A stretch of DNA of 64,000 nt from Mytilus californianus (Eukaryota): positions 37,448,001 to 37,512,000 of the forward strand of contig NW_026262679.1 in NCBI RefSeq assembly GCF_021869535.1, read 5' to 3'. Position numbers and translations under genes: made by a program. Below are positions 6,801 through 61,509 of this stretch, one piece after another; position 1 is the stretch's first letter, and every line of letters starts with the position of its first letter. The notes under the pieces were generated by a model. The model was not told where the DNA came from and did no database searches. It saw only the letters and a program-made list of their open reading frames with translations.

Positions 6801-7680
6801 TAAATCATTTATTTTTTCAAATGTTTTAGACTTTTTCAACTCGCAACTTGACTTTTGTAACTTTCAACTTGCTTTCTTAACTCTCAACTCAACTTTTGTA
6901 ACTTGCAACTCAACTTTTTTAACTCACAACTCGCCTTTTATAACTCACAGCATGACTTTCGTAACTCACAACTCTACTTTAATAAATTGAAACTCGACTT
7001 TTATAAATTGAATAGCATCTCCACTTTTATAAATCTCGATCAACTCGACTTTTATAAATCCCAACTCAACTTTTGTAACTCACAACTCAACTTTTATAAC
7101 TCGACTTTTATAAATAGCAACTCCACTTTTATATAAATCTCAACTCGACTTTTGTAACTCACAACTCAACTTTTGTAACTCACAACTCAACTTTTATAAC
7201 TCGACTTTTATAAATAGCTGAACTCCACTTTTATAAATCTGAGAACTCGACTTTTGTAACTCACAACTCTACTTTAATAAATTGAAACTTGACTTTTATA
7301 AATAGTAACTCCACTTTTATAAATGTCTACTCAACTTTTATAAATCACAACTCAACTTTTATATCTCACAACTCGACTTTCTTAATTTGCAACTCTGTAC
7401 TCAACATAACTTGAACTGATAAGGTAAATCTCTGCAGTATTAAGTGGCTGTAGTCAAACAGGTATATTATAGAGCATGTAGTTAATGGCTATATATTTTC
7501 AAGGATATTTTGGTACTTAGACTGCATCTCACAAGATCCAGACATAAATGTAACCAACTGTCATTGATATTTACATATATTACTTCTGTTCCAATAATTG
7601 TCTTGAACTTACATGCCACTAGCTAACGCAATTACTGTTAGACCTTGTGTTAGTTTCTCAACAATTACAAACGTGTCCAT
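646..7680 (-). CDS. SLC50A1: SWEET1/SLC50A1-like sugar transporter (MtN3/saliva family); spliced, 3'-incomplete in the window
   Basis: Four GT-AG-flanked exons (7680-7613, 4858-4781, 2070-1947, 807-646; 68+78+124+162 nt) join in frame with phases 2,2,0. They give 144 aa: MDTFVIVEKLTQGLTVIALASGIPPCIHMIKTGITKNVPFIFFFLGMMNGVVGTIYGLMISNATLLYINLLAMIMSAVGVVSYIAMTKSKSKPLLQVLFGSTFLLVNHWYCVRIVVHEEQVTEQYGLMMFFISLVLLASPALEV. The MtN3 pattern (TM1 SG/P, YG, IN, QxGL...ASP) resembles human SLC50A1 as recalled. I found no convincing further exon in 1-645. Confidence 0.85.
1170..1437 (+). mobile_element. Helentron/HINE-like non-autonomous element (one core unit)
   Basis: T-run, ATGCCCCCGC...GCGGGGGCAT subterminal IR, GTCC microsatellite, 3' hairpin TGTGTCC-cgt-GGACACA; same family as 38504-39575. 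Confidence 0.7.
1947..2070 (-). CDS. SLC50A1: SWEET coding exon 3 (124 nt)
   Basis: ttattacag|TGGTGTG...TCCAAG|gtaagt; GVVGTIYGLMISNATLLYINLLAMIMSAVGVVSYIAMTKSK; phase 2-0. Confidence 0.88.
3270..3615 (+). mobile_element. SINE-like dispersed repeat
   Basis: Shares the catg(c/t)ttaaccc...cctgtc(c/t)caagtcaggagcc domain with 43060-43110 and, reverse-complemented, 47180-47240. Confidence 0.5.
3617..4413 (-). mobile_element. Composite repeat (HINE-like 3' part with two ~165-bp units; perfect 27-bp hairpin at 3966-4037)
   Basis: Duplicated ttttgccccttattccttaac...cataacccccaaa units at about 4078 and 4227; poly-C and poly-T runs. Confidence 0.5.
4781..4858 (-). CDS. SLC50A1: SWEET coding exon 2 (78 nt)
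   Basis: aaatttcag|ACCACC...ATGAA|gtaagt; PPCIHMIKTGITKNVPFIFFFLGMMN; phase 2-2. Confidence 0.85.
5233..6414 (-). mobile_element. Helentron/HINE-like element in reverse orientation with ~130-150-bp internal repeats
   Basis: End ...cgacttttgttgcaggcaaagaaaaa; repeated unit aaccatgaaa(a/t)tgaggtcaaggtcagatgaaacc...caccaaatatagt (about 5-6 copies); hosts the 95-bp hAT MITE. Confidence 0.65.
5853..5947. mobile_element. 95-bp hairpin hAT-type MITE
   Basis: 44-bp arms with 2 mismatches and a 7-nt loop; exact 8-bp TSD ACCCCTTA at 5845-5852 and 5948-5955. Confidence 0.85.
6834..7410. repeat. Degenerate ~21-bp minisatellite (aactcacaactcaacttttgt-like), with higher-order units
   Basis: More than 20 imperfect copies of caactc(a/g)actttt(g/a)taa in SWEET intron 1. 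Confidence 0.85.
7613..7680 (-). CDS. SLC50A1: SWEET first coding exon (68 coding nt)
   Basis: ATG GAC ACG...GGC AT|gtaagt; MDTFVIVEKLTQGLTVIALASGI; phase 2 matches the next exon. Confidence 0.8.
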
Positions 7681-8135: not shown

Positions 8136-8334
8136 ATGGCATTAACAAGATTTCAGGTGTCATTCCTTGCTGCATGTTTAGCATTTCCCATTCTGCTGTT
8201 GATGAAACTGATTGGTGGAGTAGACAATGCAGCAGCAGTATTCGCAGTTGGCATCGTGTCTCTGCTTGTCGTTTTCCTCGTACCTCGGTTGTATTTCCGT
8301 GACGGTCCACCAAAACATGACCCATTTTACAACG
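8136..8334 (+). CDS. TM6SF1: TM6SF1 exon 1 (199 nt)
   Basis: MALTRFQ...RDGPPKHDPFYN G|gtaaat; two hydrophobic helices; phase 1 donor. Confidence 0.9.
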
Positions 8335-11300
8335 GTAAATATTTCTCATCTCATTATAGGATGTATTTTTTTCACGGTTTCATGTCTCTACGGCCCCAAG
8401 TTGATCTGGCACAAGTCCTGATTTCAAGTTCTGCTTGCAGATAATTCTTGAGATGTTTATTATTTATGTTGCTTTTGTTTGCTCTGGTCTAGCATGTTTT
8501 ATTTCATTTTAAATTTGTTGCTAAATTTTTATTGCATGCTATGTAAGTGAGATTTAACTTCGTATAACAGGTTGTTTTATATGTCAAATTAGACTGTTTT
8601 TATGTTATGTATATGTTTTTATATTCGGTCAAAAGCTCCTTAGAGCTTGTGTTGTGTCTTTTAACTTATGCCGAATCAAAATAAAGTTTTCTTATCTTAT
8701 CTTATCTTATGGTCCACATTTAAACTAAGGTCGATTTAATAGGCCCCTAGATAAAAATACCTATGATTCTGGGTCCGTTCGCCCAAAATTATGTTGCTCC
8801 CATTCACGTTAGCCCCCTTTTGCATTCGTATCCCACACGTTCACACCCTTTTATTGGTTTTGTGTTGAATAAAGTTTTAAGGTTCATGTGGACCCTTTGG
8901 CTAAAATGGCTGCATTTTCACCTCATTATTTACTCTGAGTACAGACAAACCTGTGTATCTGGAAAAATGTTAAAGCATAGCATGCCCTAGATAAATAAAA
9001 TTCAAATATATTTTATGTTTTAGAAAATTAAAAACTTAACAGGATTTTGCAGTGCACTTTTTTTCATTCCTCCAGAAGGTGCTAAAAAAAACTAAGTTGT
9101 GAAAGAGGTTTGAGAACTTCCCCACAGGTAAAAATTGAAATGAACTGTATTGATTGACATGGACAATAGATGGACAATAGATACCTGACAATAATTGGTG
9201 ATTTAAACTGTGTACCTGAGGGACCATATCAAGTGAAACTCAACTGTTTGTTAATTTTATCATCTTCTACAGGGACGAAAAAAAGTGCACTGCAAAATCC
9301 AGTTAAGTTTTAAATTTTCAAAAACATACAATGCATTTGAATTTTATTAATCTAGGGCATGCTATGCCTTAAAACTTTTTCAGATACACAGGTTTGTCTG
9401 TACTCAGAGTAAATTTTGAGGTGAAAACGCAGCCATTTTAACCAAAGGGTCCACATGAACCTTAATCGTGTTTAAGTTTACAATTGCTATAAATAAGTTT
9501 TTCCCATTGTTTTGAATTAATAATAATACTTTATTCCGTAAGCAAATACAACTCATAGGATTAAACAGATACACAAATTATACAATTTACATATACATGA
9601 TATACATATACAGCATTAATGTCATAAACAGTTTCTAACATATAGCGGAGTTTGGCATACAATTTACATTGGTAATAAAAGTACATAACAAAAATCAAGT
9701 GTTACGAATTTTCTCTGTTTCATAAAGGTATTTACCCAGCTTATTTAACTCCTTAATATTTCTTACAGATAATAACTGAACTAGTTTGAAAGTAGATGGG
9801 TTTCTAAAATAATATATCTTAATATATTTACTTCTGACATATACATATTTATCACATTCTAATATAAAATGATATTCGTCTTCGATTACTTTCTTATCAC
9901 ACATAGTACAAACACGGAATTTCTGGAAATATTAAAGTATCTTCCAGTTTCTACATTAAGTGAATGTGAATTGATTCTATATTTAGTTACATATGACTGG
10001 AATAAACTGTTCAATGGTAGATTCAAATAAAATTAAAATTGCAAAGTATGTCCATCATGTATATATTGATACAAATTACATATTGAAGTATTTTCAAAAA
10101 ATGACAAGCCTTCAGCTATATAATTATCAACAATTCTTTTTTTTAAATTCATACAAAAATAATTGACTATTTCCAACACTTTGTGCTAACCATATATCAT
10201 TAAATCCATACCTGTTTAGTATGTCTCTTATCTTACAACTCCAGTTGAGTTTATCATTCGGTTTAACAAAACTAGATTCGTACATATCTTCATAAATACT
10301 CTTCAATATACAATTATTAGATTCTAATAACTTCAACCAATAACGAACCATTCTTACATATCTATTTGCATACAGTGGTAAACGCCCAAGTTCAAAATAC
10401 ACCATATGATATACAGTTCCTTTTCTCACTTTCAAAATTCTTTTTAAATAATACAAATGAAGCGTTTCTATATCAGCTCCCTTATGAAAACCCCATATTT
10501 CACAACCATAATCCACAATACTTGTTACATATGTATCAAATAAGGATATCAAAGTCTCAATGTTATAACAATCATCATAAATCTTACTTAATAAACAAAA
10601 TGTAGCCTTTCTACCCTGTTCAGAAAGTGTTTTCTGTGTTACAGTAAAAGTACCGTTATAATTTAATAACAAACCAAGATATACAAACTGATCACACATT
10701 TCTATCATTTTACCATTCAAATACCATTTCTCATTCTCTTTGAGTACACCTCTGTTACAAAAAACAACTATTTTGGTTTTTCTTAAATTAATGTCAAGAC
10801 CATTCTTGTATGAACTATCATATACAGTGACTATCATTTTTTGTAATTCAGAAATACTTTCGCTGAAGAGAACTGTATCATCAGCATACATAAAAAGATA
10901 AATATTTAACATTTTTACTTCATATGGTTCTATTCCTTGTTTAATTAACTCAATTTCTATGTCATTTACATAAATTGCATATAAAAATGGAGATAATGAT
11001 TCGCCTTGCATTAGGCCGACATTACAATGGAAAAAATCTGAAAATTCACCATCTAATTTAACACAAGTTTTTAACTTACAATACATTGATTTAATAAGAT
11101 TCAATAGGTTTCCACTAATACTGCATTTTAACATTTTTTGCCATAAAACATAATGTGACACACTGTCGAAAGCTTTGACAAAATCAATAAAACAACAATA
11201 TAGACGTTTTCCTTTACGAATACTTTTTGATACAACAGAATGAAGGGCAAAAATGGTGTCGTGTGTACCATATCCAGGTACAAACCCAAACTGCGCATCA

Positions 11301-14300
11301 GTCAATATACTGTATTCTTTGCACCACTTTAATAGTCTTGTATTAATGACAGAAGTAAACAATTTCCCAACATGAGACACAAGCGAAATTCATCTGTAAT
11401 TTCCTGTATCATCAACTGGACCTTTTTTAAATAGCGGAACTAAATCACTCTTGACCCATATTTCTGGAAACCACCCGGTAATAAGTATTACGTTAAAAAG
11501 TTTACATAACAGTGTCAGTAGGGTTAATTTACACTCCTTCAGAAATTCATTTAATAAATTGTCATAACCTGTTGCCTTTTCTGTTTTCAATTTTTTAACA
11601 CAAACATCAATTTCTTGTTCCGTAAAAGGTCGGTCCAATTCTTCATAAATGACTTCATTTTTGTATTCTACTTCTGGTCCGTCATCAATTTCTTCTTTAG
11701 AAACTAAGTTTTTAAAATGCTTCAAAAATCATTTAATTTTATGTTGCTTTGTATGGCCTTTTTTCGTTTTCTGAATTTTCGATAAAAGTACTTTGGATTC
11801 GTTTTTCTTATAGAACTCAACATGTTTCCCCTCTGTTTTTTATATCGTCTTTTTAAACTATTTTCACTTCGTTTAAATCTTTGTTTAACGAGATTTAAAA
11901 TAAGTCTGTTTTCTTCACACTTACTTTGGTTAAAATGTATCAACGAGCGTCTATATTCTATATACAATTGTTTGCAGTCATCGTTTATCCACGGTTTATC
12001 TTGCCTTATATTTATAGGTTTATAAGTTCGCTTTGAGCTGTTACAATAATCACATTTTAAAGTTTTCGTCACTTCTGTTTTTGTATATTTATTGACAATA
12101 TCTGACAGACACGAATTAATATTGTTCACAATTTCGTCGATATTCCTTGGCTCATCGGATAAACTATTCATCAGTCCATTAATTTTATTGGAATTTGCTG
12201 CAAGGTCCCTTTTAACGTCATCTTTAAACCCTTCATTCCATTTATAACAATCATATTTTACAGTTTTACAAGTACATATTTCATTTAAGGTTAATCCTTT
12301 TAGTTTAAATACAACTTTTAACGGTGCATGACATGAAAAAGTAGTAAAATCACCAATGACAAAATCATTAACAATAGAAAATGAATCACGAGATAAAACA
12401 GTCAGGGATATAACTCTATAGGGTTATTACAGAAAAATAACATACATTTGTTATTGTGGACTAAAAAATCAAAGAACTGTGATAACTTATGCATGTTATA
12501 TGTTTCAAAGGGACAATATACATCATTAGTTTAGTTAAAATGTATAAAAGTTCTATTGATACTACTTTTGTCTATATGTATACTTACTATTGAAAGATAT
12601 AACAGTTCATAGTTTGCCAATTTTGCATAGTACACCTATATGTTATTACAGAAAAAATATGCCTGTAATAACTAAAGGGTGTTATCACAGCTTCTCTATA
12701 TCACTTCAAAGCAATGGCTCAGACATACATCATGCTTAATTACAATGTATTTTAATTTATTGTAAGAAATAATGATCAGAGCATGTAATGAGGTTCTGCG
12801 CAAGTTTCTCAGTAATTCCCCAGTGTCTTATATAATAATTTAAATTCCTTTAATAACTGAGCCTTGTTATCACAGCTAAGTTTATCCCTTAATAACCTTG
12901 TCTCATTGATTTACCATGGTTAATCAAAAATGTATATATTTAATTAAAAAATTAGTTATTAAGGCTATGCATTTAGTTTCTGCGCAGTCTCAAGAGATCC
13001 CTAGATGCCACTATAATTGAAATAATTTTACAAATAACAAATATATGTTATTACAGATTTAGAAAATTTAAGGAATAAAGAGTAGACAACTCATGAAAGT
13101 ATCTGTAATAACACACGCAAGTTATTTTCTGTAATAACCCTATAGAGTTATATCTCTGACTGTAAAAGCAAATAATCAATTATGCTACATCCATTCTTAT
13201 TTTGAAATGTAAAAGTTTCACTTTTTTTCCCAAAACGACCATTACATACTCATATACCAGATGATTTACACAAGTTTAAAATTTTACGACCAAACGAATT
13301 AGCCGGCTTTATGTCCTCTGTTGTTCTTTCACTTGGCAAATCAGGTTCATAATTAAGTAAATCAGTTTCATTGAGATTAAATATATTTAAATTGTCTTGC
13401 ATTATGAAGTCATTTTCTCTACCTATTCTTCTGTTGAGGTCACCAATCACTGCAATGTTACCTAATACACTATAATGTTCTACTTGTTCCTGCAAAACGT
13501 CAAAGACATCCAAGTCATATTTTTTATAAAAAACATTATTATCAGGAGGTATATATATAGCACATAAATATAAATCTTTACTATCAAACATAATAACATT
13601 GCTTATTTTTAACCATATCATACTATTGGCACAACAATTCAATACTTCAATATACGGATTTAACCACTTTCTATAGAAAACAATTACTCCTCCTCCGTTG
13701 CACTTGTCCCTATAAACAAACTTCTTATCATAACCATTTAATTCAAATTCCGTCTGGCATTTGACCCAGCACTCATTAAAGCATACAATATCACAATTCG
13801 TTATTTCCTGTAAAAATTCTTTGTCTTTTAATTTCCGCAACAGACCTTTAGAGATATTCCATGAGCACTCATTTAATGAACATTTATTACACTTATCACT
13901 TTCAACAGTAGTACAGCCATTCCCCGCAAACTCCTATTCCTGCCACAACTTTCTTTCAACGAACAATTTATCTCCTACAAAATATGCCTCTGTATTTTCT
14001 TTCCTTTTTTTCCTTCATCACCGGGATCAATTTTTTTCGTTTTAATAACACCTCTGTCGGGTACTGAGGACTAATTCCAAAACTTGTTTGTTTTAAGCGA
14101 CCCGAAGCTTTTCGTACCGTTTCTCGATCATCGAAAACAGCAAATTTTACCACTATTGGTCTCGGTTTTTCGGCATTCATCTTTTTCCTACCAAGTCTAT
14201 AGGCTTTTTCGAGTTTTATGCACGTTTTAGCGTCTTTGATATTCAACCTTTGCTCAAGAAAATCTGTAATAATGTTGATGCAGTTTTCCAGAACTTTTTT

Positions 14301-17300
14301 TTCCGCCGCATTCGCCTCCTCAGAATCACCCTGTGCCCTGTTTATTCCAAAGATTGCAAAGAACAGTAGATTATTGCTAAAGTTTTGTTTTTCAACGTCG
14401 ACGAGTCTATTTTTCACATTTAAGTTTACTGTTTTGGAAGTTTCTATGCTTTCAGTCACCTTTTCAAGTTTCTTTTTAATAGATTGGTGTTCATCCTTAA
14501 TATCGGACATAAATTGGGCACTATGTTCAAGCGTGCTTATTCTGTCTTTGCAGGATTTAATATCATATCAACATCAACAGCACTAAATTTCAAATCGTAT
14601 TTGTTTAATCGCTCTTCAATAGAGTCTAGCTTGTTGAGTTTAGTTTCGATCGAATCAACATTTTTACACAATTCATTTAATATCATCTCAATTCCGTTTG
14701 TTGCTAGATGAGGCGGCAGGGGTGGGGGTGGCGGTGGTGGACTCGGGTATTGTTGAAACTGATAGGGCTGGCCATATAACTGGAAATTTGGTGTACTTAA
14801 TTGAATGGGTGTTTACTGACTAAACCCTTGATTAATTGAATTGTTCATGTTTGTATTTTGATCGTTATGAATAGTAGGTGAGTTGTTGTAAAGACAAGAG
14901 AATGCCTCACTTAGTGTATCTGTTAAAAATACCTTGTTTTTGTCACCCTTTATGTCACCTGAACACTTTTTCTTGCCTTTTGTAAACAAAGAACTGTCAC
15001 TTGTCGAGCCTTCAGATGAAGTATTTCCTTTAGTACGATTTTGCCTCTTTCGTTTTTTGTCTTTTTTGTCTGTCTTATTTGGCATCACTAATCACAAATT
15101 TAAATCCAGTTAAAAGTAACTAATGCTGCATATTCACAAATTTTACGCATTTTTATATCATAATTCAAGAGCGAAATTTTTCACTGCCATTCAAACTGGT
15201 GCATGCGTATGATTAAAGTGACATACTAAAAACGTAAACAGGTTTCCTGTAGTGTTTTATTGTTTAATTGAATATTTTGACGAAATGAATCATGAATGAA
15301 AAATTGTCATGAGGCGAAAGATACTAAATCTTCAATGAGTTTACTCATACCAAGCTATAAACTTCATGTAGTATTTACATCAACGCTAGTTATAAAAGAA
15401 CAATTATACCAAATTTGGCTTTGTAAATACCAATCAACTAATAACAGTAATCATACATAATTAGCATTTATAAATAGTCGTCAAATCACAATAATAAAAT
15501 TAAAAAAATTCTAGACTTTTTAAAGAAAATTTAAATATTTTGATAAAAACATCTAAAAAATATCTAATAATTCAACCAGTATTTGAATAAAATTAGGGGG
15601 TGAATGTGTGGGGTGTGAAGGTGTAGGGTGCGAAGGTGTATTGAGAGCCAATGGACCTGATACCAATACCTACAACGGATAAAAATGATATCTGTTTCAT
15701 TAAGTTGTTTATAAGTAAACAGTATATCAAATTTGGAACATTCTACAGAATTCTTTTTAAGGTTCATCAGGAGGAATTAAAAAAAAAAATGTGTTAACGC
15801 CACAAAATCATGAAAATTACAGGCATACAAATGTACCTGTAAGCATTTTAAGGCATGACAGGAACTAGATATTTAAAATTTAAATGTATTTATTTTATGT
15901 TTCAGAAAATTATAAACTTATGTTGATTTTGAGATTCCTCTTTTTTTCCATTCCCACTGAAGGTGCCAAAATAAAAAACACCTGAATATCATATGATAGG
16001 ATCCACTCATTTAAACAGTTTTAATCCCCAAATGTTGTGTAGATATCTTTTGTCCATGTCAATCAAAACAACTCACTAAAAATAATATTATTATGTAGGG
16101 GAACATCTCAAACTTTTTCCAGCATATTTTATTTTGGCACCTGAGTGAATCTCAAAATCCAGAAAAGTTTATGATTTTCTGAAAACAAAAAATATATATG
16201 GGTAAAGCCAAAAAGGTGCTCCAAATTGGTCAAATAACCATCTGAAGCTTAAATCCCAATTTTAAAATATTTAATATATGTTATTTGATTACAACTTGTT
16301 ATTGAGCATCAGTGACATGATGAAGTAGAAGATTTGATAAATATCAAATATCCGCTAATTCAATGTGTCTTGTTATTGAAGTTTGTCAAACGTAGATCTG
16401 TACGTTCCTGTGTCCCAAGCGTGACATGGAAATCCCCTTCTAACAAAAAATATACCTGGTTGTTTTTATGGGCAAAAGAAAAACGGAAAGTAAGTTAAAT
16501 CGTCAGAAAAGTGTTGTTGCACTATAAATCCGTCAAAGTTTTGCGTGAACTGCAGTAAAATTAATCAAAGAAACGATTATTTCGACAGGGTTAGTAATGT
16601 TATATTGACAATAGACTACTATGGTAAAAATAACGCACGGGGTTTTCCGCGATATCGTCATCTGCGGAACATTTGATTGGTTCCTGTCATATTCATGCGC
16701 CGTCGTATCTCGGCTGTTTCAAATAGTTCTAATTTTGGTTTCGTATTCCGTTTTATGAGAAGCATAGAATGGCAAGTTTGTAATGTCAAAATAACGTATA
16801 ACGTACGTAAAATGTTAATTCCTTATTATTAACGGAAAGAGTTTATCCAGGGAGAAAAAAATACTTTGTTTCATTTCAAAATTGCTATATATACGAAACT
16901 AAATGTAAGCATCACTATCATTCATGGATGAAAATGGAAGAAGAACTCGATGGTAAGTTTTTAGCAAAATGTCAAACTAATAACGACCAAGGCGTCAAAC
17001 AAAGTATAACGACCAAACCATTCTGTCAAATTGACACTGTTTTATTTAATTTTTGCCAAAATAATATGCTTAGAATGATAAGAACTAACGAATATAACGC
17101 ATTCAAGCACCCAAGTCAAACCATTCGTTCACTTTTTACGGTAACATCGATATGACCGTTACTTGACCAATTTTGTCAACCCAGTCAATATAACACCTAG
17201 GATGTAGATGATCTTTGTAGAGATATACTGCACCATTCTTTTCATTTAACTTCTATTTCAACTTACAGATAATAAAGGGGGAAAGTTAATATACATTTAA

Positions 17301-20300
17301 AAAGGGTGAAGTAATTTTCAGTGCTTTTTCACAGGGTGTTAGTTGACAATTATATGCATAGTCAATATAACCAGGGTCATTAAGAGAGTTAGTTGACACC
17401 TTAATGTAAGGGTCAATATAACTCCTACTCCCTCAGTAGTCCTAAAGCTACTATTACTACTGAAATATGTTGACTTTGGCTTTTAGCCTACAAATCTCTT
17501 GTACAATAAAAAAATCAAGCCTTTTAATGAAATTGTAAGCATATTTCCTGCTTCTTTGAAATAGAGCATACGTTGACAACTAAAGGTTTCAAGTCAATAT
17601 AACCATGGTCCAAAAGAGAGTTAGTTGACACATTAATTTTATAGATGTAAATACAGCCTTTTATCAAAAGAACATCAACAAAAAACAAGAAAACAGAAAA
17701 TTGTCACAAGACTATAACATGCAAGTTTCTGTCTTGAGACGGTGCAACAAGTTTGTTTTTAAGCACTCAACCTCCCCATACCCTTGAATTTGACAATAAA
17801 AACATGAATGTAGACACAATGCAAATCAATGTGAAGTGGATACTTATTTCCAATGCTGTTTTCAACATTGGATAACATACAACATCATAAACATAAGAAG
17901 ATGTGGTATTATTGCCAAAGAAACAACTCTCCACCTAAGACCTAAAGAAGTAAAAAAAAACAATAATAGCCTATAAGGTCACGTTATGGCCTTCAACATG
18001 GAGCCTTGACTCACATTTTCATTCATTTCAATTTAAAATCATGTATAAAACTATTTTAACTTTATTTATTTGCTTTTCAGATCTTTGAGATAAATCAACT
18101 GAGTATGAACAGTGGAATAGACAGCAGAATGAACTTTAAAATGTTTTTAATTTGTTTAAATAAATGATTTATGGTTTGATTCTTGAATAGTGGTTTAATT
18201 ATTAGTATTGTCATACATTAATCATGTTAATGTGTTTTATACTTTAGTTTCAAAAGTGTTGATTTAATAAGCTCTTGAAAAAAAATTGTTGAAAACAGTT
18301 GATCAATAAAGTCACCATCTGACATAGCCAAGAGTATCATAACTGTACATATTAAATGAGCAACCTTTGACCAAAGTACAAAGTCAGTTCAAGTGAGCCT
18401 AATTAACAATACTCCTAAATACCAACAGTAAACAATATGTTCCCCTAAATACTGTGAGTAACTCATTAAGTGTCTGTTTACCATCAGGCTAAGCTAACTC
18501 TTGCAGTGCACCGGATAGTTTTATTGGGTTAAAAGTATGTCGGTTAAAAGCTCATTAGAGCTTATGTTGTCTCTGTTTGTATACCTTGCCGACTCTAAAA
18601 TAAAGCTTATTTATTGGGTTTGAGTTGTTATTTAAGGTTTGTTCTTTTCTTGTTATTTATCTTGATTTCTCCTCTCCCTTTTGGATTTGTGAATTAGTGC
18701 ACCTTTATTTTTCTTGCATTCTATAGTTGTCACTTTGATCTGATAGATCTCAGATAGTTTTGGTTATGAGCTTGTGACTTCATTATTAGCTGAACAATAA
18801 TGAACATGAACCCCTGCATGCAAACAAGAATTAAGTTTATATCAAAATAAACATAATGGATCAAACTCTTTGTGTTCAGATGTTACACCAGATTTCCTGT
18901 TTTATTTCAGTAAGTTACTTGACATTGTGTCAATATAACAACCAAAAGACGGTAGTGTTGTGAGCAATATAAGCATTCAATCATAATTTGGTAAAATGAA
19001 AAATAACCATCAGTTACCTAGACAATAGTAGAAAAAAAATCTTTAATAAAAATGATTTTGAAAAAGGTTAAATTTAAACACTATTCGTCAATATAACCTA
19101 CATGTAAGATATGGTATACAAGATTTATAGTCATCTTCTTCATTTAGAAGATTAAGCTGTATTGGATAACTTTTCCCCTACTTAAAAAATCAGCTAGTGT
19201 TGCCCCCCCTGTTTTTTGAGTGGCCTGTTTTAAAATTAAGGCAGAAAAACTATCAAAAAGGGTTATTGTCAAAATAACATACATTGAATTTGGATTTAAT
19301 TATGTCAACGAAGATCTTGGTTTACAACAACTACATAAAATATTTCATTTGAAATATAATAATTATGTTTACAAATATAATTGCTGTTCAAAAAACGTTT
19401 TACACAAGTTACTAGAAGAAAACTTTATTTTGGACATCTATAACATACTGATCTTGCTCAGAGCACTGACATTTCAGAACATCAGGGATAAATCTGTGAA
19501 TTGGTCTATGATATAATGATGTTGAAAGATATTATGTGCAGCTAAGTATTGATACATTTCATTAATCCCATAAGAAACTATTTAAAACAAAAGATGCGCT
19601 ATTGTCAATATAACTTACACAAAATATACAAGGAAGGTCAATTTTACAAAAACATAGCAAGACCAGGGATTTCAAATAAAAAGAGGTAGTAAGATACAGA
19701 TGGTTGCTAACAAAATAATGTGAATTGATAGAGATATCAAAAACTTCAATTTTATATCCTAATGTCACACTTTCCAGACCACCTTTATGGCTTTACCCAT
19801 ATATGTATTTAAACTTTGATTATCTAGTCACTGTCAAGCCTTGAAAAATTACCAGTTGCACAGGTATGTGACAGGTTTGTCTGTTCTCAGAGAAAATTAT
19901 GTTGTGTAAACATGGCCACATTTTTCAATTCTTTTTATAAACCTTTCATTCAACATGTTCAATGTGAATCATTTCCGATATAAAGCCCAAGAAAGAAATA
20001 AATGATTTTGGACATATTGTTTTACCAATGTCTGTAGATGTCTCGCATAGGGTACATGATTTATCCAGCTAACTCATGGCTCCTCCGTCAGTTTTCAAGC
20101 TAGATCCTTATACATGTACATGTAATATGTCACAGGTGTTACCTGATGAGCTCCTGAAGGTTTGATAATATTTATTGTTGCATGTTTTTTTTTTATTTGT
20201 CCTCATACCTTTGGTAATCAGATATGAAAACTTGTAGGAAATCATATGTCCCTCAGATACAAATTTGCCAAAAACTATATGCTCTTTTATGATGTTGTAT

Positions 20301-23300
20301 TTAGGAAAAATCCTTAAAAGGAAGGTCTTTCACTACATTAGCAGTGTGACCCAAATCAATTCTTCTACCATTTATACAGAATGTTAAGGTACACATACCT
20401 GCATACCATGTATACTAAACATGCTGAAGGTGTGAACATTACCACAATTTCGATTTCCTTAACATTTTTCACAGATGGCAAGATAAAGTTGTCATTTTTG
20501 TGAAATTATTCATGCTGAGCACTTGTTCACTTCACAGAATTTTTAATTATTACATGTATATCTTATTCATTTGAACAATGAAATTGCAAGCTCTACGAAT
20601 ATGCAGCTATGCATAAAAGTTGTTTGTCATTATTATTTTTAATGGTACATGTATGACATGCAGAACAATAGATCTTATATTTTTTAATTTATACATTTCA
20701 GTTTGGAGTATTTTCCTTTTTGCTTCTTTAGTGGATATCACTGTTGCCTTAGAGAATGATGGTTATATTGAGAAATACATGCATTTCTACCTCCTGCAGG
20801 GAGAACCTTATCTGAAAACTCCCTTTGGAACTATGATCAACTACTGGGATGGTGTAATACACTTTGCTTTGGTTTTATTTGTCTTGTCAAGGAAAAGTTA
20901 TGAGTAAGTCAGTCAAAGCTTGGTCAAAATGACACTTTACCATGTCTGCATCAAAATGAAATTAAAACTCAGTTGAGTAAGAGTAATGTATTTTTTAAGT
21001 TTTTTTCAGCAATATCTTGGGATATATTCTTTGAATAGAAGGAGCTTATACTCTCTATATGAAAATGTATATACATTGTACATATACATGTATGGCATTC
21101 AATTCATTACAATATTCAATATATCTGATATATTCAAGCAAAGGAACAAACTTCAGGGTGATTCAGAGCTTGACATGTGAAAAAGACAATTAACTGTGGT
21201 CTAAGACAATTTGTTGGCTTGTAGATGTTTTGTGTTGCTGTGTTGCTGCATGTCTCTTTGACATACCTACTTCTCAACTTCTCCCTAATTCATCATGGTC
21301 ATTGTGATTAATGTCACTGACTCATATGAAATCAATATGCAATAAGAGTCATTACAGTATTAAAATAGTAGAATCTTATTCACAAGAGAGGTACATGTAG
21401 CTTAAGTCAGGTACCACTGTACTCCATATATGTTGTGTTTGCATGAATAATACATTTCTTATCACATATCTAACCTTTGATGTGGATGTCCTTCTCAATA
21501 TCATAGATTCTATCTGCTTATAACATTTTTTTTCCTATTATGACTACATGCATGACATGTACATGTACTTGTACCTGCATGTCTAATAATTCACTGTTAT
21601 CTTTAATTACTCATCATGGCCATATATTTCCAATCATCATGTAAGTTTCCTCTACTGACTACTGTTGATTTGAAAATTATTTTATATAGTTAAGATAGGG
21701 TTTCTCTAGTTACTGTGGTCTTTCCTCTTTTCCATTGTTCAAAATTTCCACGCTTTGTATTTTTTCATAAAAGTTGTCTATCAAATTTTTTTTATTAGAA
21801 TTTGATAAAATGTGAACAATAAGTACACATGTACATGTATGCAACTGCATTTTAGTTTTGAAGTTGTATTACCAACTGAAAAGAAACAACAACCTTCAAA
21901 TTTTGAAACAACAGCATGCACCTCTGTGCATATGCATTAGAATTGACCTCAGTTGTTTCTATGTTTACATGCTGAAAATAATAATTTATGCATGAAAATT
22001 AGTGTAAACAGTTTTATATGTAAGTTAAAGGTACAGAATATGTACATTTTTACTTCTGGTTGTTCAAGGAACAGATTTGGTTTAATGAAAAACTCCTTTT
22101 CTTCTGTGATCTTCATGATCTTGGCCAATATGGTTTGTACCCTCACAGTATGTTTAGTTTTCACATATTGTGCATAAAAAGAATATTTTTGTGTCTGAGT
22201 GGAATTATATATGAGCTTAAACATCTCTATTCCAACCTGACCTTATTTTTTTGTAGCATGGAGTATTCTTTTGTTTTCCTCCATGGTTGATGTAGTTATT
22301 GCCCTTGAGAATGATGGTTTTCTAGGTAGATATCTACATTTTTACCTGTTGCAAGGGGAACCTTACCTGAAAACTCCACATGGGACCTCTATTTGTTATT
22401 GGGATGGTTCAGTACATTTTGCATTGTACATGTTTATCATGTCAAGAAGTAATTATAAGTAAGTATATATATTAAAGTGTACAACATACAAAACCAGATG
22501 TACCTTTTACATGTTTTATGAGAGAAATTATTTCAGTTCTGAAATTGTTTCATGAAAAGCTTTATATCCTTTATAATTGATATAAATCTTTGTTGATCTA
22601 CTTTTTACCTCATTATTACAGATTAAACTGGGTTTGGGAAACCCCTTCCCAATTTTATTTTCAGGGTTTTTTGCCTTTTTGAGGGTCAATTGGTTGCAAA
22701 TGCTTTGACAAATATTAGATTTGTGTTACAAGTTTTTCAACAATATAGGTTGGGAAAAAAATTTCCCCTCTCCCTTCCTAAAGACCAGTTGTGAATGGGG
22801 ACTGCCCTGTCCTTTAATTTTCTGTATGTGATTCAAAATTGGTTTTATTGGTTAAAATACCTTAAACAAAACCAGTTTATATAGGTTATATATATGTATT
22901 GAAAACACCTATTGAAACTTTTCTGAATGAATTTTTAAAAAGTGTTTTCTGCATTATTAAGGTCTTTTTAAGTTTCTGCTGCCAAAAGCACCATGCTCCT
23001 TTCAAAATCTGACAGAAAAACTAGTCAGTATTCTGAATAATTATCAGGTTTATTATACAGGTTTCTTGGACCCTTTAGTCATGTTAGTTATTTTGATTCT
23101 GAATACATTGTTGACAAACAAAAACAGGATTTTTTTATTACCAAATACATTGTACCGGTAATCAGGAAAAATACAGTAATAAAACTTCTTTTAAGTAGAA
23201 ATTTTGCATGCTTGTAAATTTAGTTGTGTGATAGAAAATGTAACATATGGAAAGGGCATTTATGTGCATGAAAAACGTGAAATTCAATTACGATTTTACA

Positions 23301-26300
23301 ATGAACAGGAATTGTTTTAATTTTGGGTTTATGACTGTGTGCATGAAAAAAAGCCAAATAAATGTGTTACAGCATGAAAACACATGGATTTAAACTGGCA
23401 ATCATGTTAAGTGAAAATAACCCCTTTAACAACCTTGTTGAAATGTCTTGGTAGCAAAATTGCTTGAATAGAACAATGCAACACAAACATTCATACATTT
23501 CCTAACTAATAATATTTTACAGTTTTTAATTTGGATTTGTTTAATTTTTTTGTTATCAAATTTATAATTCTTTGTGTTCATGATATATGTGAAAAATTTC
23601 ATTAATTTTGTTTGCTGACATTTTATATTTGTGTGTTTTTACATCTATTATTGATTCAACAAAATTGTGAGAGTGTAAAGTATTGGTCACAGAAGAAGTT
23701 TATTGAAATTGACATGAAATGTACAATTACACTAAAAAAGGGTGAAACTAGGAAAGTGTAGCAGCAATCCTCAAAAAGAAGCGTTTCTAACCTATACATG
23801 TATTTTCCATGCATGTCAAGTTTAAATTGAACATCATTTCTCAGATACTAAGCATGCTGAGTGACCTACATTTTAAGCCTTTTCACACTGAAGTTAAATT
23901 TCACTTTTATAATTATTTCAAGTATCATACTGTAAATTCAGAATTTTTGCAATGTTTTTATTATTGGTAAAATTACAACAACACAAGCTCTCGTTTTAAT
24001 TCCAATGACATAATTTGATTGCAGCATTACCTGAAATTGCGATAATATAGATTGGCGTTCGTGTAGATTGTCCAACAATCGCAATAATTTCTGATTTTAC
24101 AGTATTAGGTTTATCAAGCCAGTATGAGAATACACCTTATCGCTATTTAGTCCAATCCGGAAAAAAAAGTCACTTAGACAACTTCCTGTTTGTGTCTTCC
24201 GGCGCCAAAACAAAGGTCATCAGTAACGAGCTGAGGGAAGAAAAATTTAGAAAGCAAACACTTTGAAACTTTGATTATGATCCACTTTTTTTGAAACTCA
24301 AATTAAAGTAAAAAAAATATTTTGTTTGAAGTGTTTACAATGGTTTAAACAGGTCTCTTTAAAAAGTATTATGCATGATACATTGTTTAAACAGGGCCCA
24401 AGATGATGATAGCAATAAGGTGTATGAAGCAGCTTTAATTTGATAGATTGCTGGTAATTCTGTTGTTATATTGTTGTCTCAATCAAACATGACAAATTGA
24501 TTCTATATCATACATTTACATTGGCAATGGACTTTCTTCTCAATAATTCTGTAAATTTTTGTACCACTGCGAGAATGACTAGACTAAACAAAGCTATAGA
24601 GTTGATTTTAATTTCAGTGAGGAATATAGACTGGCTTGTTTGTTCTGGTGTGGTTCTATCATAAACAGTGTAGCAGTGCTGGTACCGGGAGGAGCAATAG
24701 GTAATTTAATAAAAACTAAATTTATATTGAAAAATAAAATGCAATTGCACAAAATAAAATGTCTACACATATTTAAACAATTAAATTTATGTTTTAACTC
24801 CTACATCTAAAGGCACAAGTTACTTAATGGTTAGGTTACTGGCCAGTCATGTCAGTGTTACCATTTTGTTATTAAGGAAGTTCTTTCTTCCAAAAATATT
24901 TAATGCAGTAATACACAATGCCCTTCATATTACATCTGCTTATTTTCCTTCATAAATAACATGTTCTTGCTCAAATCTGCACAATCTTATATCGAAAGCT
25001 GTTTATATGTGCCATCCTTTTTGTCATTTTGTTATTTTGTCATTTCATATATTCATTTACTTTATGCTTGATTTGAAAACATATTTGTATAGATGGACTC
25101 CCATAATTTTCTGAATTATATTCTTTTTTTTTTATATTTTTGCAGGGAAATTTGGTCCAAAATGGTCTATTCTTCTAAATGTGCCATATGTAGTTATACC
25201 ATTATACATCCTCTTCAAAGTATTGAGTTCACATTCGGTAAGTTTAGTGTGTTAATAAAAATTCTATGGAAAATTGTACTCTAATAAATTTTACAGCTAC
25301 ATTTCTTGTCAGATTTTTATGAGACTTTAATCAAAGGTGTATATCAGCAATGTCTTGGACGAGGTTTGATAATCTTGATAATATTTTACAGGATTTTCGC
25401 ACCTTGGAAATATAAAAAGTTATGGAAAATCACATTGTAGCTATTTCATGCTTACATTTTTTGTGGGATATTTATGGAAAAAGAAGGTAAATAAATTTTA
25501 AAAAAATATATTGGGAGTTATTGCTCTTGGACAGATAAAATATGTACATTGGTGGTGGACATTTGAAAGCTGTTCTGTTATTTTTAGGTAAATAAAGGCA
25601 ACAGTAGTATACCCCTGTTCGAAACTCATAAATCGATAGAGATAAAAACAAATCTGGGTTACAAACTAAAACTGAGGGAAACGCATCAAATATAAGAGGA
25701 GAACAACGACACAACAAAAACACAACATTAAAATGTAACACACACAGAAACGAACTATAATATAACAATGGCCATTTTCCTGACTTGGTACAGGACATTT
25801 TAAGAAAAAAATGGTGGGTTGAACCTGGTTTTGTGGCATGCCAAACCTCCCGCTGTTATGGCAATGTAAAATATAACATTAAAATGACAACATTACATGA
25901 CATGACTACAATACAAATAAATGGGAGAACATATAGGACAAAGAAACACACGAATAATAGCTAACAAAAGGTACTAGGTTTAGAATTTAATACGCCAGAC
26001 GTGAGTCTCGTCCACACAAGACTGGGACAAGAACATCCTTATTATTTAGAATAATATATACTATTGCAAACAGTAAATTTTATAAAATGACTATATAATA
26101 GATATACATGATAAAACCGAAGTGGGGACTAACTACAGAATAAAAACGGATACATTACATAAAACAACTTAATCTAACACATAAAAATATACAGCCGAGT
26201 TAGCCAAAGCCTCAACGCACAAAGTGACGTCACATTTGAAATTCTAAAAAACACACAAAGTGACGTCACATTTGAATTTGTAAAAATATTTCCCAAAAAT

Positions 26301-29300
26301 AAGATAGAATTAGGATTGATTCAAGATTAGATCTGTAATACTGACATTACATTTATTAATAACAATGAAAATTACAATACTATTAATATCAAATTGTGGT
26401 AGTAATTAGATAATTAATTGTATTATCTAGCTATGTCGGTGTTTCTTCTGAATCAAACTGTAAACCAAATATATCTTATAAATTTTGTTGAACCAAACTA
26501 AAATTTAATAAATGAAGGGGGTGATTAAGTATCTTTACCATAACACACGAATATAACAAAAAAGACGTTAAGACATTTGACAAAATCCGACGAGACTAAC
26601 AAATATAACATCAAAATTAAATATATGAATTTGGGATTGAAAAGTACCGTGAAACGTCTTATAGCAATGCGGTTTCACACTCAGCAAAACAGTCACGTTC
26701 GGTAATTAAAAGATCAGACGACGTAATGACAAACCACAATCTAACACGTGGTAAAAATGTCCTTAGTTAGTTTGGACAAAGACACATCGTATGGTTGAAT
26801 TGAATGTGAATTATATAATAAGAACTTGAATGAGATTTTTGTTGAACCTCTGAAATTTTGTTTAGGAAGAGAGTCATCACTATCAATCATTTTGGAGGCA
26901 GTAACATATAGGTAAAGTCTGACTGTTGTTTTAGATTTTTTTTAAATCAACAACATTGTCAACCCTTCATGAAAATGTATACTTGCACAAAGGCTTTTTT
27001 ATAATAAAAAGACAGAGCAAAGTTTTGAAAATATTTTTTTTTTCATTTTTCTGTATTATACTGATAAATGGACAAGTGTTTTGCAGTTAACATTTAGATG
27101 CAGTCTGTGAATACATTTTGTAGATGTCAATAACTTTGTCAAACCTTCCGGGTATGTTATGAATCTTGGACAGAAGCCTCTCCAAGATCAAGACTCAACA
27201 TATGAACAAAAATGTTTGATATTTTATAATTTTTTTCCATATTTTACTGATAAATTGACTTAGCTTTTGGCAGTCAATATTACACTTTTACTTGGGCAGC
27301 AGCTATAGAAATTTTTTCTTCAAAGCTGTAATGTATTTATATATCTATGTATATAAATTGTTTATGAAGAAAACACTATAAAAAGATGAATGATTGATTA
27401 TACATTTCTGGGGGAATTAAATATATCATAAAACAGATAAATGTTTGTCCATGACAGTCAGCTCAAGTTTGGAAAAAAGGCAGGACAATGCAGCAAACAG
27501 TCTTAATATTCCAAGTTTTGAAATAATTTGCATTTATTTTTTAGGCAAGCAGGAGAAATGTGTTGACATTCATAGGGACCAGAATGAAAAAAGGACCAGT
27601 AGAAATGTTGTTTATTCTTTTCTTTGTGACTTGCATTGTAATTAATGCATTCAGAGCTGCTGTAAGTTATTGTAATTAATGCATTCAGAGCTGCTGTAAG
27701 TTATTGTAATTAATGCATTCAGAGCTGCTGTAAGTTATTGTAATTAATGCATTCATATTAGGAATTATGTTATTGAAACATTAAAAGAAAGTTTGTATAT
27801 GAAATAAATGGGTTAACAGGTTACTGGAAGACAGAAAAAGGATGGAGAGAATGGGGGTGTGACAACAAAATGATATATTTGTCTGATTCCTTTAAATCTG
27901 TCCATTATGGGCTATATGCATGTTACATATTGTTTAGTAAGTTACAACAAGTATTTATATTGTAAGATCTTACTATATAAATCCTTGGTTACAATGTTTA
28001 TATTAATGTATGCCTATGATTTATTGATGTTGAAAAACATCTTAATATGTGCTTGAGTTATACATGTTATATCTAGATCTCTTAACATGGAACTAGCATA
28101 TTTTTAAGATTGTACTATGAAGAAGCGAGACAGCTAGTTTATATACAGACTAGTAATAACTACAATATTTGCAAAATATTTCAGCAAGAAGAATTCACTT
28201 TGATCATGACCACCAATAGATATATTTTATTAATTTGACTGTACATGAATTTTTGTTCAAGCTGCCTTTGGAGATAATTTTTCAGAGATAGGACTGTATA
28301 AAGATATATATGTCATTAAAAATTGAACTAAGCAATTCCTTACATCATTAAGTAACTCATGATTGATGGTTACTGATTGTCATACACTTAATATCTATCA
28401 CATGAAAACCAGTATGTTAGTGACCCTCCTTTTCATTAGCATTGGAAGGATTTTAAGTCTGAGTCTGTTGTACATAACAAAAGTTTTGATTAACCTTTTG
28501 TTTGTAAACATTTTTGCAGATTTACTTTTGTTATGATATGAATATAGAAGAAAAATAAATGAATTTCTTACAATTTGTTGGTGTTTCAGAGAAACATAAA
28601 AATAAATGAATCCATGATAATTTTTTTTTTTGAATAGAATTATCAAAATCCATTCTGATTTATCTCCAGGTTACCTTAGGCTGTAAAGCAGAGATGGCAG
28701 AGAACTACCTCAAAGATTTTGAACCTTTCCTAGCTGAAGATACATCTTTTCCAAAGATGCAGGTAATAAAATTGATAATATTTGTACTGAAATTCAAGTT
28801 TCTTTTCATTAACTTTGATATTGTTTTCAGTATGAATTGGCATCCTTTTCAAATTTAAAGTGGCACCTTACCATTTCAGATCTATTCATTGATTATAACC
28901 CTTTGTAAGTATGAATAATATCATTTCATGTTATGACTTTCAGAACCCAGTTGTTCATCTCTCGGTTAAATTTTAACCAAGGGTTAAATATCATAACCCG
29001 AGGTTACTTTCTGTTGATCGTCCTGTGGTTAGATTTAATCCTTTGTTAAATCCTTGGTTAAATGATTCAGATTTAACCTTGCTTCGGCCCTCTGTTAAAA
29101 TTTTAACCAAGGAATAGTGTTGTCTAAATTACTATTCCCTGTTTATAACTAGACTTGAAAGGTCACTAAATTTTGATACAACACCTTCCTCATTTTCGAC
29201 AACCATTAGTAATAAAAAAACTGATTATTATGTTTTACAGTCCTTCCCCCTTTTTAGCAACGAGGTTTACGTTCAAAGTGTCTACCTAACAAACATTTTT

Positions 29301-59100: not shown

Positions 59101-61509
59101 AACAAAAACAGGATTTTATTACCAAATACATTGTACCGGTAATCAGGAAAAATACAGTATTGTGGAAGATGAATTAAACTTCTTTCAAGTAGAAAATTTT
59201 GCATGCTTGTAAATTTAGTTGTCTGATAGAAAATGAAAATATGGAAAGGGCATAAATATGCATGAAAAACATGAAATTCAATTACAATTTTACAATGCAC
59301 AGAAATTGTTTTAATTTTGGGTATATGACTGTGTGAAAGAAAAAAATCTGAATAAATGTGGTACAGCATGAAAACACATGGAATAAAACTGGCAAGCATG
59401 TTAAGTGAAATAGCCCCTTTATCAACCTTGTTGAAATGTCTTGGTAGCAAAATTGCTTGAATAGAACACTGCAACACAAACATTCATACATTTCCTAACT
59501 AATAGTATTTTACAGTTTTTTATGTGGATCTGATTTATTTGTTTGTTATCAAATATAAAATTCTTGGGTTCAGGATATATCTGAAGAATTTCATTTATTT
59601 TGTTTCCTGACATTTTATATTTGTGTGTTTTTGCAACAATTATTGATTCAACAAAATTGTGCCAGTGTAAAGTATTGGTCAAAGAAGAAATTTATTGAAA
59701 TTGACATTAAATGTAGAATTACACTAAACAAGGGTGAAAGTAGGGGAATGTACCAGCAATCTCCAAAAAGAACCGTCTCTAATCATTACATGTATTTTCC
59801 ATGCATGTCAAGTTTAAATTGAACTTCATTTCTCAGATACTAAGTGATCTACATTTTAAGCCTTTTCACACTGAAGTTAAATTTCACTTTAGTAATTGTT
59901 TTAAGTATCATACTGTAAATTCAGAAATTTTTTGCCAATGTTTTTATTATTGTGAATATTGCAACAATACAAACTCTCGTTTTAATTATAATGTCATAAT
60001 TTGTATGCAGCATTTCCTGAAATTGCGATAATATAAATTTACATTAGAGTAGACTGTCCAACAATCACAATAATTAATGCTCACAATAATTTCTGATTTT
60101 ACTGTATAAGGAAAGTCAATATAAGAATGAAGCAGCTTTAATTTGATAGATTACTGGTAAATCTGTTGTTATATTGTTGTCTCAATCAAACATGACAAAT
60201 TGATTCTATATCATACATGTACATTGGCAATTGACTTTCTTAATAATTCTGTTAAATTTTGTACCACTGCCAAAATGACTAGACTAAACTATAGAAATGA
60301 TTTAAATTTCATAGGGATATAGACTGGCTTGTTTGTTCTGGTGTGGTTCTATCATAAACAGTGTAGCAGTGCTGGTATCGGGAGGAGCCATAGGTAATTT
60401 AATATAAACTAAATTTGTTGAAAAATAAAAAATAATCTGCACAAAATAAAATGTCTACACACATTTGAATAATTAAATTTACATTTTAACTCTACACCTA
60501 AAGTCACTTACTTAATGGTTAGGTTACTGGCCACTGTTATCCTTTTAGTATCATGAAATTTTTTCCTCCAAAAATATTTAATGCAGTAATGCACAATGCC
60601 TTTCAAATAACAACAGCTTATTTTCCTTTATGTATCATGTTCTTGCTTATATCTGCTCAATCTAATATCGTAAGCTTTTTATATGTGCCATCCTTTTTGT
60701 CAATTTTATCATTGACATACATGCATTTACTTTATGCTTGCTTTGAAAACGCGTTTGTATAGAACTTCTTGGATTCCTGTATGTTTCTTAATTATGTTCT
60801 TAGTTTTTTTTGTTTTTTTTTTTGCAGGGAAATATGGTCCAAAATGGTCTATTCTTCTGAATGTGCCATATGTAGTTATATCATTATACATCCTCTTCAA
60901 AGTACTGAGTTCACATTCGGTAAGTTAAGTGTGTTAATAAAAATTCTATGGAAAATTGTACTCTTAAGTAATTTTACAGCTACATTTCTTGTCAGATTTT
61001 TATGAAACTTTAATCAAAGGTGTATATCAGCAATGTCTTGGACGAGGTTACATAATCAACTATTTTTACAGGATTTTTGCACCTTGGAAATATAAAAAGT
61101 TATGGAAAATCAGTTAACATTTAGATGCAGTCGGTGATTACATTTTGTTGATGTCAATAACTTTGTCAAACCTTCATGATATGTAATGAATCTTGGACAG
61201 AAGCTTCTACAAGATCAAGAATCAACATCTGTATAAAGTCAGGACAACCATGACAGTGGAGAAAACAGTCTTATTTTCCTAGTGTATAAATAATTTGCAT
61301 TTATTTTTAGGAAAGCAGGAGAAATGTAATGACATTCATAGGGACTAGAGTGAAAAAGGGACCAGTAGAAATGTGGTTTACTCTTATCTTTGTGACTTGC
61401 ATTGTAATTAATGCATTCAGAGCTGCTGTAAGTCATAATCTTATTGTAATTAGGAATTATGTTATTGCAATATTAAAAGGAAGTTTGTATATGAAATAAG
61501 GGCTTTTCC

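Follow-up and report, generated by a model that had tools for sequence, protein, structure and literature searches.

A mussel TM6SF1-like gene carries two homologous second coding exons that are used alternatively in productive mRNAs

Introduction

Does one mussel gene make two TM6SF1-like proteins by exchanging a single exon? The question is raised by a 64,000-nucleotide (nt) stretch of the Mytilus californianus genome (GCF_021869535.1, contig NW_026262679.1, forward strand positions 37,448,001 to 37,512,000; hereafter the window, numbered from its first letter), in which a TM6SF1-like gene has two homologous second coding exons of identical length, 2a and 2b. It asks both whether each exon is used in place of the other and what keeps messages with both or neither from being productive. 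Homologous exon substitutions are rare and, where studied, mark sites of functional tuning. Vertebrates have two TM6SF genes instead, encoding lysosomal TM6SF1 and TM6SF2 of the endoplasmic reticulum. The evidence given here makes it very likely that a tandem duplication of the second coding exon arose in this gene within the mussel lineage, and that one copy is used per productive mRNA, giving two isoforms.

Results

Two homologous exons of equal length and phase

The exon pair and the intron that separates its members lie on the plus strand of the window:

20702-20903, plus strand: exon 2a, 202 nt; residues 67-134 of RefSeq isoform X1 (V WSIFLFAS...SRKSY D); diagnostic residues A74, K91 and N113
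20904-22256, plus strand: 2a-2b intron, 1353 nt, U2-type GT-AG; removable by splicing; repeat-like transcribed segment at about 21494-21824
22257-22458, plus strand: exon 2b, 202 nt; residues 67-134 of RefSeq isoform X2 (A WSILLFSS...SRSNY N); diagnostic residues S74, R91 and C113

Both exons have a pyrimidine-rich tract and AG on their 5' side and GTAAGT on their 3' side, and each is open in frame 2 only, so that both are entered in phase 1 and left in phase 2. The original prediction, made from the letters of the window, had described two homologous, open 202-nt exons of phase 1-2 with strong splice sites, and the splice-site motifs and reading frame bear this out. The exons are identical at 138 of 202 nucleotides and at 44 of 66 whole codons (44/68 counting the split boundary codons, both of which differ, V/A and D/N); the same 44 identical residues had been counted before, out of a total given as 67. 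An invariant HFYLLQGEPYLKTP block common to 2a and 2b carries synonymous differences, also as predicted, and tblastn with a relative's protein gave matches to both exons (E 1.5e-33 and 5e-30). By these sequence comparisons, the similarity of 2a and 2b is far beyond chance. Intron flanks of 300 nt next to 2a and 2b aligned no better than shuffles (z 0.7 and 1.3) and held no duplication relics, in agreement with the earlier statement that the flanking introns do not align. A Pfam search with the 66-residue translations of 2a and 2b gave no match because the pieces are too short.

Splicing the window exons with 2a reproduced XP_052100340.1 (isoform X1) at every residue, and splicing them with 2b reproduced XP_052100341.1 (isoform X2), again at every residue. 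The two isoforms are each 385 amino acids (aa) long and are identical outside 24 of the 68 exon-2 residues.

Both exons connect to exon 3 in RNA contigs

We compared the RNA runs X1, X13, X2 and X21 with positions 20400-25400 of the window; these run labels are distinct from the RefSeq isoform labels X1, X2 and X3, and runs X1 and X13 come from different studies. The joint between 2a and exon 3 (20903>24618) was present at a contig depth of 21.3 in run X1 and 18.5 in run X13, and the joint between 2b and exon 3 (22458>24618) at 9.94 and 8.75, giving a 2a:2b ratio of about 2:1 by contig depth. No joint from 2a to 2b (20903>22257) was listed among the contigs of the M. californianus runs examined. 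Exons 2a and 2b are alternative in mature RNA, each being joined to exon 3. The claim that one gene gives two isoforms was upheld in this way, with both exons joined to exon 3 in two studies and the spliced products equal to RefSeq X1 and X2.

In runs X1 and X13 each exon occupied its own 261-nt unitig, with 30 nt before it and 29 nt after it (exon at record positions 30-232). This geometry fits a k=31 graph bubble between the common end of exon 1 and the common start of exon 3, the left arm measuring 30 nt and the right arm 29 nt together with a shared final A. Run X2 contributed unspliced or genomic pieces. At least 0.82 of the sampled 2b words were found in each of 20 runs from about 10 studies, 4 of these runs being on record as RNA, and some sister runs from studies with 2b carried none of its words; this uneven presence hints at variable use of 2b. 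Full-length transcripts running from exon 1 through 2b to exon 3 were found in two further species, Y and Z, described below.

Both copies are conserved among mussels

Ratios of nonsynonymous to synonymous substitution (dN/dS) were estimated by the Nei-Gojobori method. The paralogues 2a and 2b gave 0.15, with a saturated dS of 1.66. Between M. californianus and Mytilus galloprovincialis, 2a gave 0.17 (62/66 residues identical) and 2b 0.08 (64/66), while the aligned blocks of the two loci, mostly intron, are just 70-82% identical. All three ratios, of which the original prediction had proposed the one between 2a and 2b, are well below 1, and as judged from these substitutions purifying selection acts on both copies.

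The M. galloprovincialis locus (L006) contains 2a and 2b in the same order, 202 nt each, with the same phase and splice-site motifs. As side observations on this locus, intron 1 (8335-20701) measures 12.4 kb in M. californianus and about 1.2 kb in M. galloprovincialis (L006 3199-4424), and the 2a-2b intron measures 1.35 kb and about 3.7 kb, respectively.

Three mussel-like species (likely mytilid), here called X, Y and Z, have 75-77% protein identity to M. californianus. Both exon types were found in Mytilus edulis, M. galloprovincialis, species X and species Y. Species X (Logan runs SRR34486192, SRR34486194 and SRR34486202) has 2a in contig L004 and 2b in contig L003; of the differences between two full-length transcripts of species Y, P0177 (2a) and P0180 (2b), 14 fall in exon 2 and 1 elsewhere; and the species Z transcript is of the 2b type. 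Three type-fixed residues, A/S74, K/R91 and N/C113, distinguish 2a from 2b in all mussel species compared (at least four lineages). The first two exon nucleotides are CA in 2b and TT in 2a in both Mytilus and species X, and the split first codon of 2b encodes V, not A, in the species Y and Z transcripts. Repeating the word search with the 2b region brought no further relatives, and an exact look-up of isoforms X1 and X2 in the contig collection, which excludes the genome of the window, gave no record.

NCBI automated annotation predicts a 2a-type X1 and a 2b-type X2 in M. californianus, M. edulis and M. galloprovincialis, and 2a only in Mytilus trossulus. We also noted an M. edulis protein, CAG2257700.1 (P0168, 435 aa), that contains part of 2a (68-116) and the whole of 2b (118-183), the exon pair being mis-annotated there.

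The duplication is specific to the mussel lineage

In a maximum-likelihood tree of the 68-residue exon-2 segment, with scallop, oyster and Aplysia as outgroups, mussel 2a and 2b formed one clade that left out all three outgroups (support 84/93). All 2b sequences grouped together (83/88), and a 127-row tree agreed. A tree with 2a as one clade was not rejected (p-AU 0.12), but was not the best tree. The genomic loci of Saccostrea (oyster) and Pecten (scallop) have one exon-2 homologue each, with no second copy at the loci examined, so the duplication is specific to the mussel lineage and not ancient across animals. By these sequence data, it would have taken place after the split from oysters and scallops and before the divergence of the mussel lineages compared here. 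The description of the pair as ancient was thus overstated: the duplication is old within mussels, where 2a and 2b form one clade, and of the related loci compared, that of M. galloprovincialis has both exons and those of oyster and scallop have a single exon. At the Pecten maximus locus (L014), we observed four short tandem matches to scallop residues 258-281 at 7011-7356, intronic and adjoining the real exon, which may be repeated exon fragments.

The gene encodes a TM6SF1 homologue

The remaining coding exons were placed as follows:

8136-8334, plus strand: exon 1, coding part; ATG at 8136; transmembrane helices (TMs) 1 and 2; ends in phase 1; donor GTAAAT
24618-24700, plus strand: exon 3; common acceptor for 2a and 2b; start of TM5
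25146-25237, plus strand: exon 4; in the spliced chain matching RefSeq; contig joint 24700>25146 (listed as 24698>25144, cut +2)
27545-27661, plus strand: exon 5; in the spliced chain matching RefSeq
28670-28762, plus strand: exon 6; in the spliced chain matching RefSeq
32828-32953, plus strand: exon 7; in the spliced chain matching RefSeq
34965-35210, plus strand: last exon, coding part including the stop codon; in the spliced chain matching RefSeq

The exact match of this chain to RefSeq also verified the neighbouring junctions proposed earlier, at the exon 1 end (8334) and the exon 3 start (24618).

A profile of 2a and 2b searched against a library of 1.84 billion proteins retrieved TM6SF-family proteins, the nearest named matches being "transmembrane 6 superfamily member 1-like" of Mytilus species (NCBI name). 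Among PDB chains, phmmer matched human TM6SF1 (10up_A, E=4.2e-68, residues 10-357 covered), and the precomputed Pfam assignment is PF26083 TM_Tm6sf2; a Pfam EBP/EXPERA match at residues 239-352 scored 21.7 bits, below the 25.7 cut-off. On this homology the mussel gene is identified as a TM6SF1 homologue, in keeping with the name first given to it, which the match to the solved human structure (E=4e-68) sustains. The exon pair was not found described in the searchable literature, as had been supposed, but the NCBI annotation lists both isoforms in three Mytilus species; the pair is new to the literature, though already predicted by automated RefSeq models.

Two kinds of additional sequence were observed in and near the locus. 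At 60293-61436 and past the window end (G000:C99:37512441-37512578) lies a partial tandem duplicate of the TM6SF1-like exons 3-5 (and 6), with 93-94% nucleotide identity including intron flanks. A genome search found no counterpart of exon 1, 2, 7 or 8 for it, and the acceptor of its exon-3 copy is altered; this recent duplicate is likely a pseudogene fragment. The intronic segments 23907-24407 and 25243-25400 have RNA contig depths of hundreds to more than 1000, with many loose ends and internal joints, and have short inverted repeats on their flanks (23927-23946/24086-24105 and 24130-24146/24409-24425). Their appearance is that of an abundant, transcribed repeat class resembling miniature inverted-repeat transposable elements or short interspersed nuclear elements.

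Mutual exclusion holds for productive mRNAs only

Since 202 is not a multiple of 3, including both exons, or neither, shifts the frame to an early stop. Double inclusion brings a stop 10 codons into 2b and a 144-aa product, and double skipping a stop in exon 3 and an 81-aa product, confirming the frame shifts foreseen for both combinations.

Transcripts with both exons exist. The RefSeq X3 model of M. californianus (P0163, XP_052100342.1; MTWSILLF...) is an open reading frame that starts from an ATG over the last 4 bases of 2a and runs into 2b, and that of M. galloprovincialis (P0165, XP_076101558.1), with the N-terminus MVPYTLLWFYLFCQGKVMTWSILLF..., also reads out of 2a into 2b. These X3 proteins are downstream open reading frames of out-of-frame 2a+2b transcripts and no true isoforms. 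In species X, contig L003 passes from 2a into 2b exactly at the exon boundaries and continues into exon 3; its two exons have no exact common run of more than 22 nt, which rules out a chimera made by k=31 assembly. Double-inclusion transcripts were thus seen or annotated in three species (M. californianus, M. galloprovincialis and species X), and because these forms are out of frame, exclusivity holds for productive mRNAs only. Of the mutual exclusion originally proposed, the alternative use of each exon in productive mRNA stood and strictness did not: exclusion is leaky. Incompatibility of reading frames combined with nonsense-mediated decay would act as a filter on the forms with both exons or neither.

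Other explanations of the exclusivity fared less well. Steric hindrance was rejected, as the original prediction had argued from intron length: the 2a-2b intron is 1353 nt long (about 3.7 kb in M. galloprovincialis) and, given that double-inclusion transcripts exist, can be spliced out. Incompatibility of U2 and U12 sites was rejected as well, all sites being GT-AG with GTAAGT-type donors. An inverted-repeat scan of 20300-24700 for docking and selector sequences returned only AT-rich or short repeats. In a duplex scan of two species only, the window and the M. galloprovincialis locus (190 aligned 30-nt segments, about 18,000 pairs; null 0.1% quantile -20 kcal/mol), the top pairs were exon-exon or within null expectation. 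The conserved core that 2a and 2b have in common can pair with an element of the intron near 21690 (-23.6 and -22.0 kcal/mol), but this element was not accepted as a docking/selector candidate because other intronic windows pair equally well (-23.5, -22.9 and -22.7). Docking/selector RNA pairing is therefore not supported by the sequences compared, and the conserved intronic elements that had been envisaged did not rise above background.

The segment of the 2a-2b intron at 21494-21824, which overlaps the 21690 element, was covered by RNA contigs at a depth of 4-16. The contigs show numerous mismatches and one loose end, at 21668, and the segment is probably a dispersed repeat.

The exchanged segment surrounds an invariant pocket core

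The AlphaFold2 model of the mussel protein (pLDDT 84.9, pTM 0.85) has ten long helices. Exon 2 (residues 67-134) covers TM3 (helix 65-85), TM4 (helix 107-129) and, between them, a loop that has short helices at 94-105. A Foldseek search of the model against a PDB copy that predates the TM6SF1 entries, with matches of poor E-value but high probability and TM-score, returned the sigma-2 receptor (7m94_A, probability 1.00, TMt 0.72; 7mfi_C, 0.98, 0.74) and EBP (8w0r_A, probability 0.91).

Human TM6SF1 (PDB 10up and 11br) is reported to be a lysosomal protein that binds cholesterol, with EXPERA repeats formed by TMs 3-6 and TMs 7-10; its cholesterol is enclosed by TMs 1-6, the pocket is lined by F72, N77 and Y95, and N77, residue 115 and H119 correspond to the EBP catalytic triad (bioRxiv 10.64898/2026.04.01.715928). 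With these repeat limits, exon 2 of the model makes up half of EXPERA repeat 1, namely its first half, so that the earlier description of the swap as half of the first EXPERA domain applies to TM3, the loop and TM4. We noted that V19, F23, I42, F72, N77, Y95 and H119 of the preprint agree with the 10up_A numbering, and that the residue it names 'Glu115' is, in the aligned 10up_A chain, the Asp of YWDG.

By phmmer alignment, the mussel equivalents of human F72, N77, Y95, 115 and H119 are F73, D78, Y96, D116 and H120, all identical in 2a and 2b; one pocket-core residue, D78 (human N77), differs between the species. The 24 differences between 2a and 2b are distributed over the segment as follows:

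TM3, 7 differences: 67, 71, 74, 76, 79-81
Loop, 5 differences: 88-91, 93
TM4, 9 differences: 108, 111, 113, 118, 119, 124, 125, 127, 128
Linker after TM4, 3 differences: 131, 132, 134

Judged by helical periodicity, positions 74, 81, 113, 119, 124 and 127 may face the pocket, and the type-fixed position 113 (N/C) is separated from D116 and H120 of the pocket core by one turn of the helix. Since the pocket-core residues are invariant between 2a and 2b, the swap would tune their surroundings and not switch sterol binding on or off. The YWDG region of 2b had been called closer to vertebrate TM6SF1. This holds for the human motif, ICYWDGS, which is as in 2b, but the scallop and oyster outgroups have N at the flanking position, as in 2a.

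Discussion

In the history that we favour, the second coding exon of a single TM6SF1-like gene would have been duplicated in tandem in a mussel ancestor, after the split from oysters and scallops, and both copies would then have been retained. Productive mRNAs would run from exon 1 through either 2a or 2b to exon 3 and encode the two 385-aa proteins, double inclusion or skipping would lead to an early stop and, presumably, removal by nonsense-mediated decay, and trans-acting splicing factors would set the 2a:2b ratio. The exchange could tune the pocket surroundings or a surface that faces lipids or partners.

Several observations weigh against this history. Of the junctions proposed for counting, those downstream of the pair were seen, but the joints from exon 1 to 2a and to 2b in M. 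californianus follow from unitig geometry and RefSeq identity and were not read directly. The RNA evidence consists of assembled contigs, which drop rare forms, and the only raw-read RNA run, X21, is thin on the gene (depth about 1), with a single 20903>24618 junction read. The tree supports are only moderate and rest on 68 columns. Finally, the two copies of species X are much closer to each other (55/66 residues, dS 0.67) than those of Mytilus, a likeness that calls for gene conversion or unequal rates and weakens the case for a single duplication.

Some of these points would suit other explanations. Under one, which we consider improbable, the gene effectively makes one protein, and one copy of the exon (2b being the likelier) has no separate function and is merely tolerated as a minor or noise exon. 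The twofold excess of 2a in runs X1 and X13, the annotation of M. trossulus with 2a only and the runs that lack 2b words although their studies otherwise have 2b all lean this way. A noise exon, however, is at odds with 2b being the more constrained copy between Mytilus species (dN/dS 0.08, 64/66) amid mostly intronic blocks of 70-82% identity, with S74, R91 and C113 of 2b being kept in four lineages, and with the full-length 2b transcripts of species Y and Z; 2b depth is also about half that of 2a and no mere trace. If instead the pair were mainly a regulated switch for unproductive splicing, in which substrates of nonsense-mediated decay tune output and the protein difference is secondary, the double-inclusion transcripts seen or annotated in three species and the early stops of both non-canonical combinations would be accounted for. 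Such a switch has no need of open frames and isoform-specific residues under purifying selection in both copies, and the 2a>2b joint is missing at contig level in the M. californianus runs examined; we regard this explanation as very improbable.

Scarcely credible is the idea that different mussel lineages duplicated the exon independently, or that the tandem arrangement is an assembly artefact. The greater likeness of the species X copies to each other (55/66) than of X-2b to Mytilus 2b (49/66) speaks for independent events, as does the 2a-clade tree, which at p-AU 0.12 is not rejected but is not the best, all supports being moderate. Set against these are the saturated dS between the copies, the grouping of the 2b sequences of all species (83/88) and the type-specific residues common across species, together with the CA/TT start common to Mytilus and species X (the 2b of Y and Z has V); and the M. 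galloprovincialis assembly, with the same order, 202-nt lengths and splice sites, speaks against the idea as well.

We thus return to a single duplication in the mussel lineage with one copy used per productive mRNA. It is conceivable, if rather unlikely, that the single mussel TM6SF gene makes by splicing two functionally distinct sterol-handling proteins, as vertebrates do by two genes. These proteins might prefer different sterols, such as cholesterol and the phytosterols in the diet of filter-feeding bivalves, or differ in compartment or partner binding. The scope is limited to mussels and to a pair already predicted by automated annotation, and any functional difference between the isoforms is putative.

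Comparison with known systems

The mussel pair is a typical homologous exon substitution arising from tandem exon duplication, a well-documented class, and is new in the TM6SF family; for the vertebrate TM6SF genes, the searchable literature reports neither a duplicated exon nor a homologous exon substitution. Duplicated alternative exons are known in bivalves and other animals from the oyster alternative oxidase (PMC5589949), and a COQ-2 exon pair from helminths, molluscs and annelids (PMC7434440). As in both of these, each mRNA uses one of two adjacent homologous exons of equal length and phase, the difference between isoforms is confined to a homologous segment near the ligand site of a membrane protein, and both copies are conserved across related species; the mussel pair differs in its gene family (TM6SF1), in a duplication confined to mussels and in visibly leaky exclusion. 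It also resembles the tandem duplicated exon substitutions of humans (PMC9741552, PMC8373072) in that homologous exons substitute for each other under purifying selection. Most of the human events are described as ancient (PMC9741552), whereas the mussel pair is lineage-specific.

With docking/selector systems (Dscam, 14-3-3 zeta and ATE1; PMC6071210, bioRxiv 10.1101/2020.06.04.134791) the pair shares homologous alternative exons and a long separating intron, but in the two-species comparison it has no conserved complementary pair above background. With the class of mutually exclusive exons based on reading frame or nonsense-mediated decay it has in common a length that is not a multiple of three and a frame broken by both exons or neither. 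The pair is a clear case of exclusion that is policed by the reading frame, restricted to one lineage and detectably leaky.

Compared with human TM6SF1, the mussel protein has full-length homology, ten predicted TM helices, two EXPERA repeats and conserved equivalents of F72, Y95, residue 115 and H119, and differs in having D where the human protein has N77. Because the pocket of human TM6SF1 is built partly by TM3 and TM4, the helices that the exon pair exchanges, the two mussel isoforms constitute a natural, selection-tested set of 24 substitutions round an invariant core, which could guide mutagenesis of TM6SF1 and TM6SF2.

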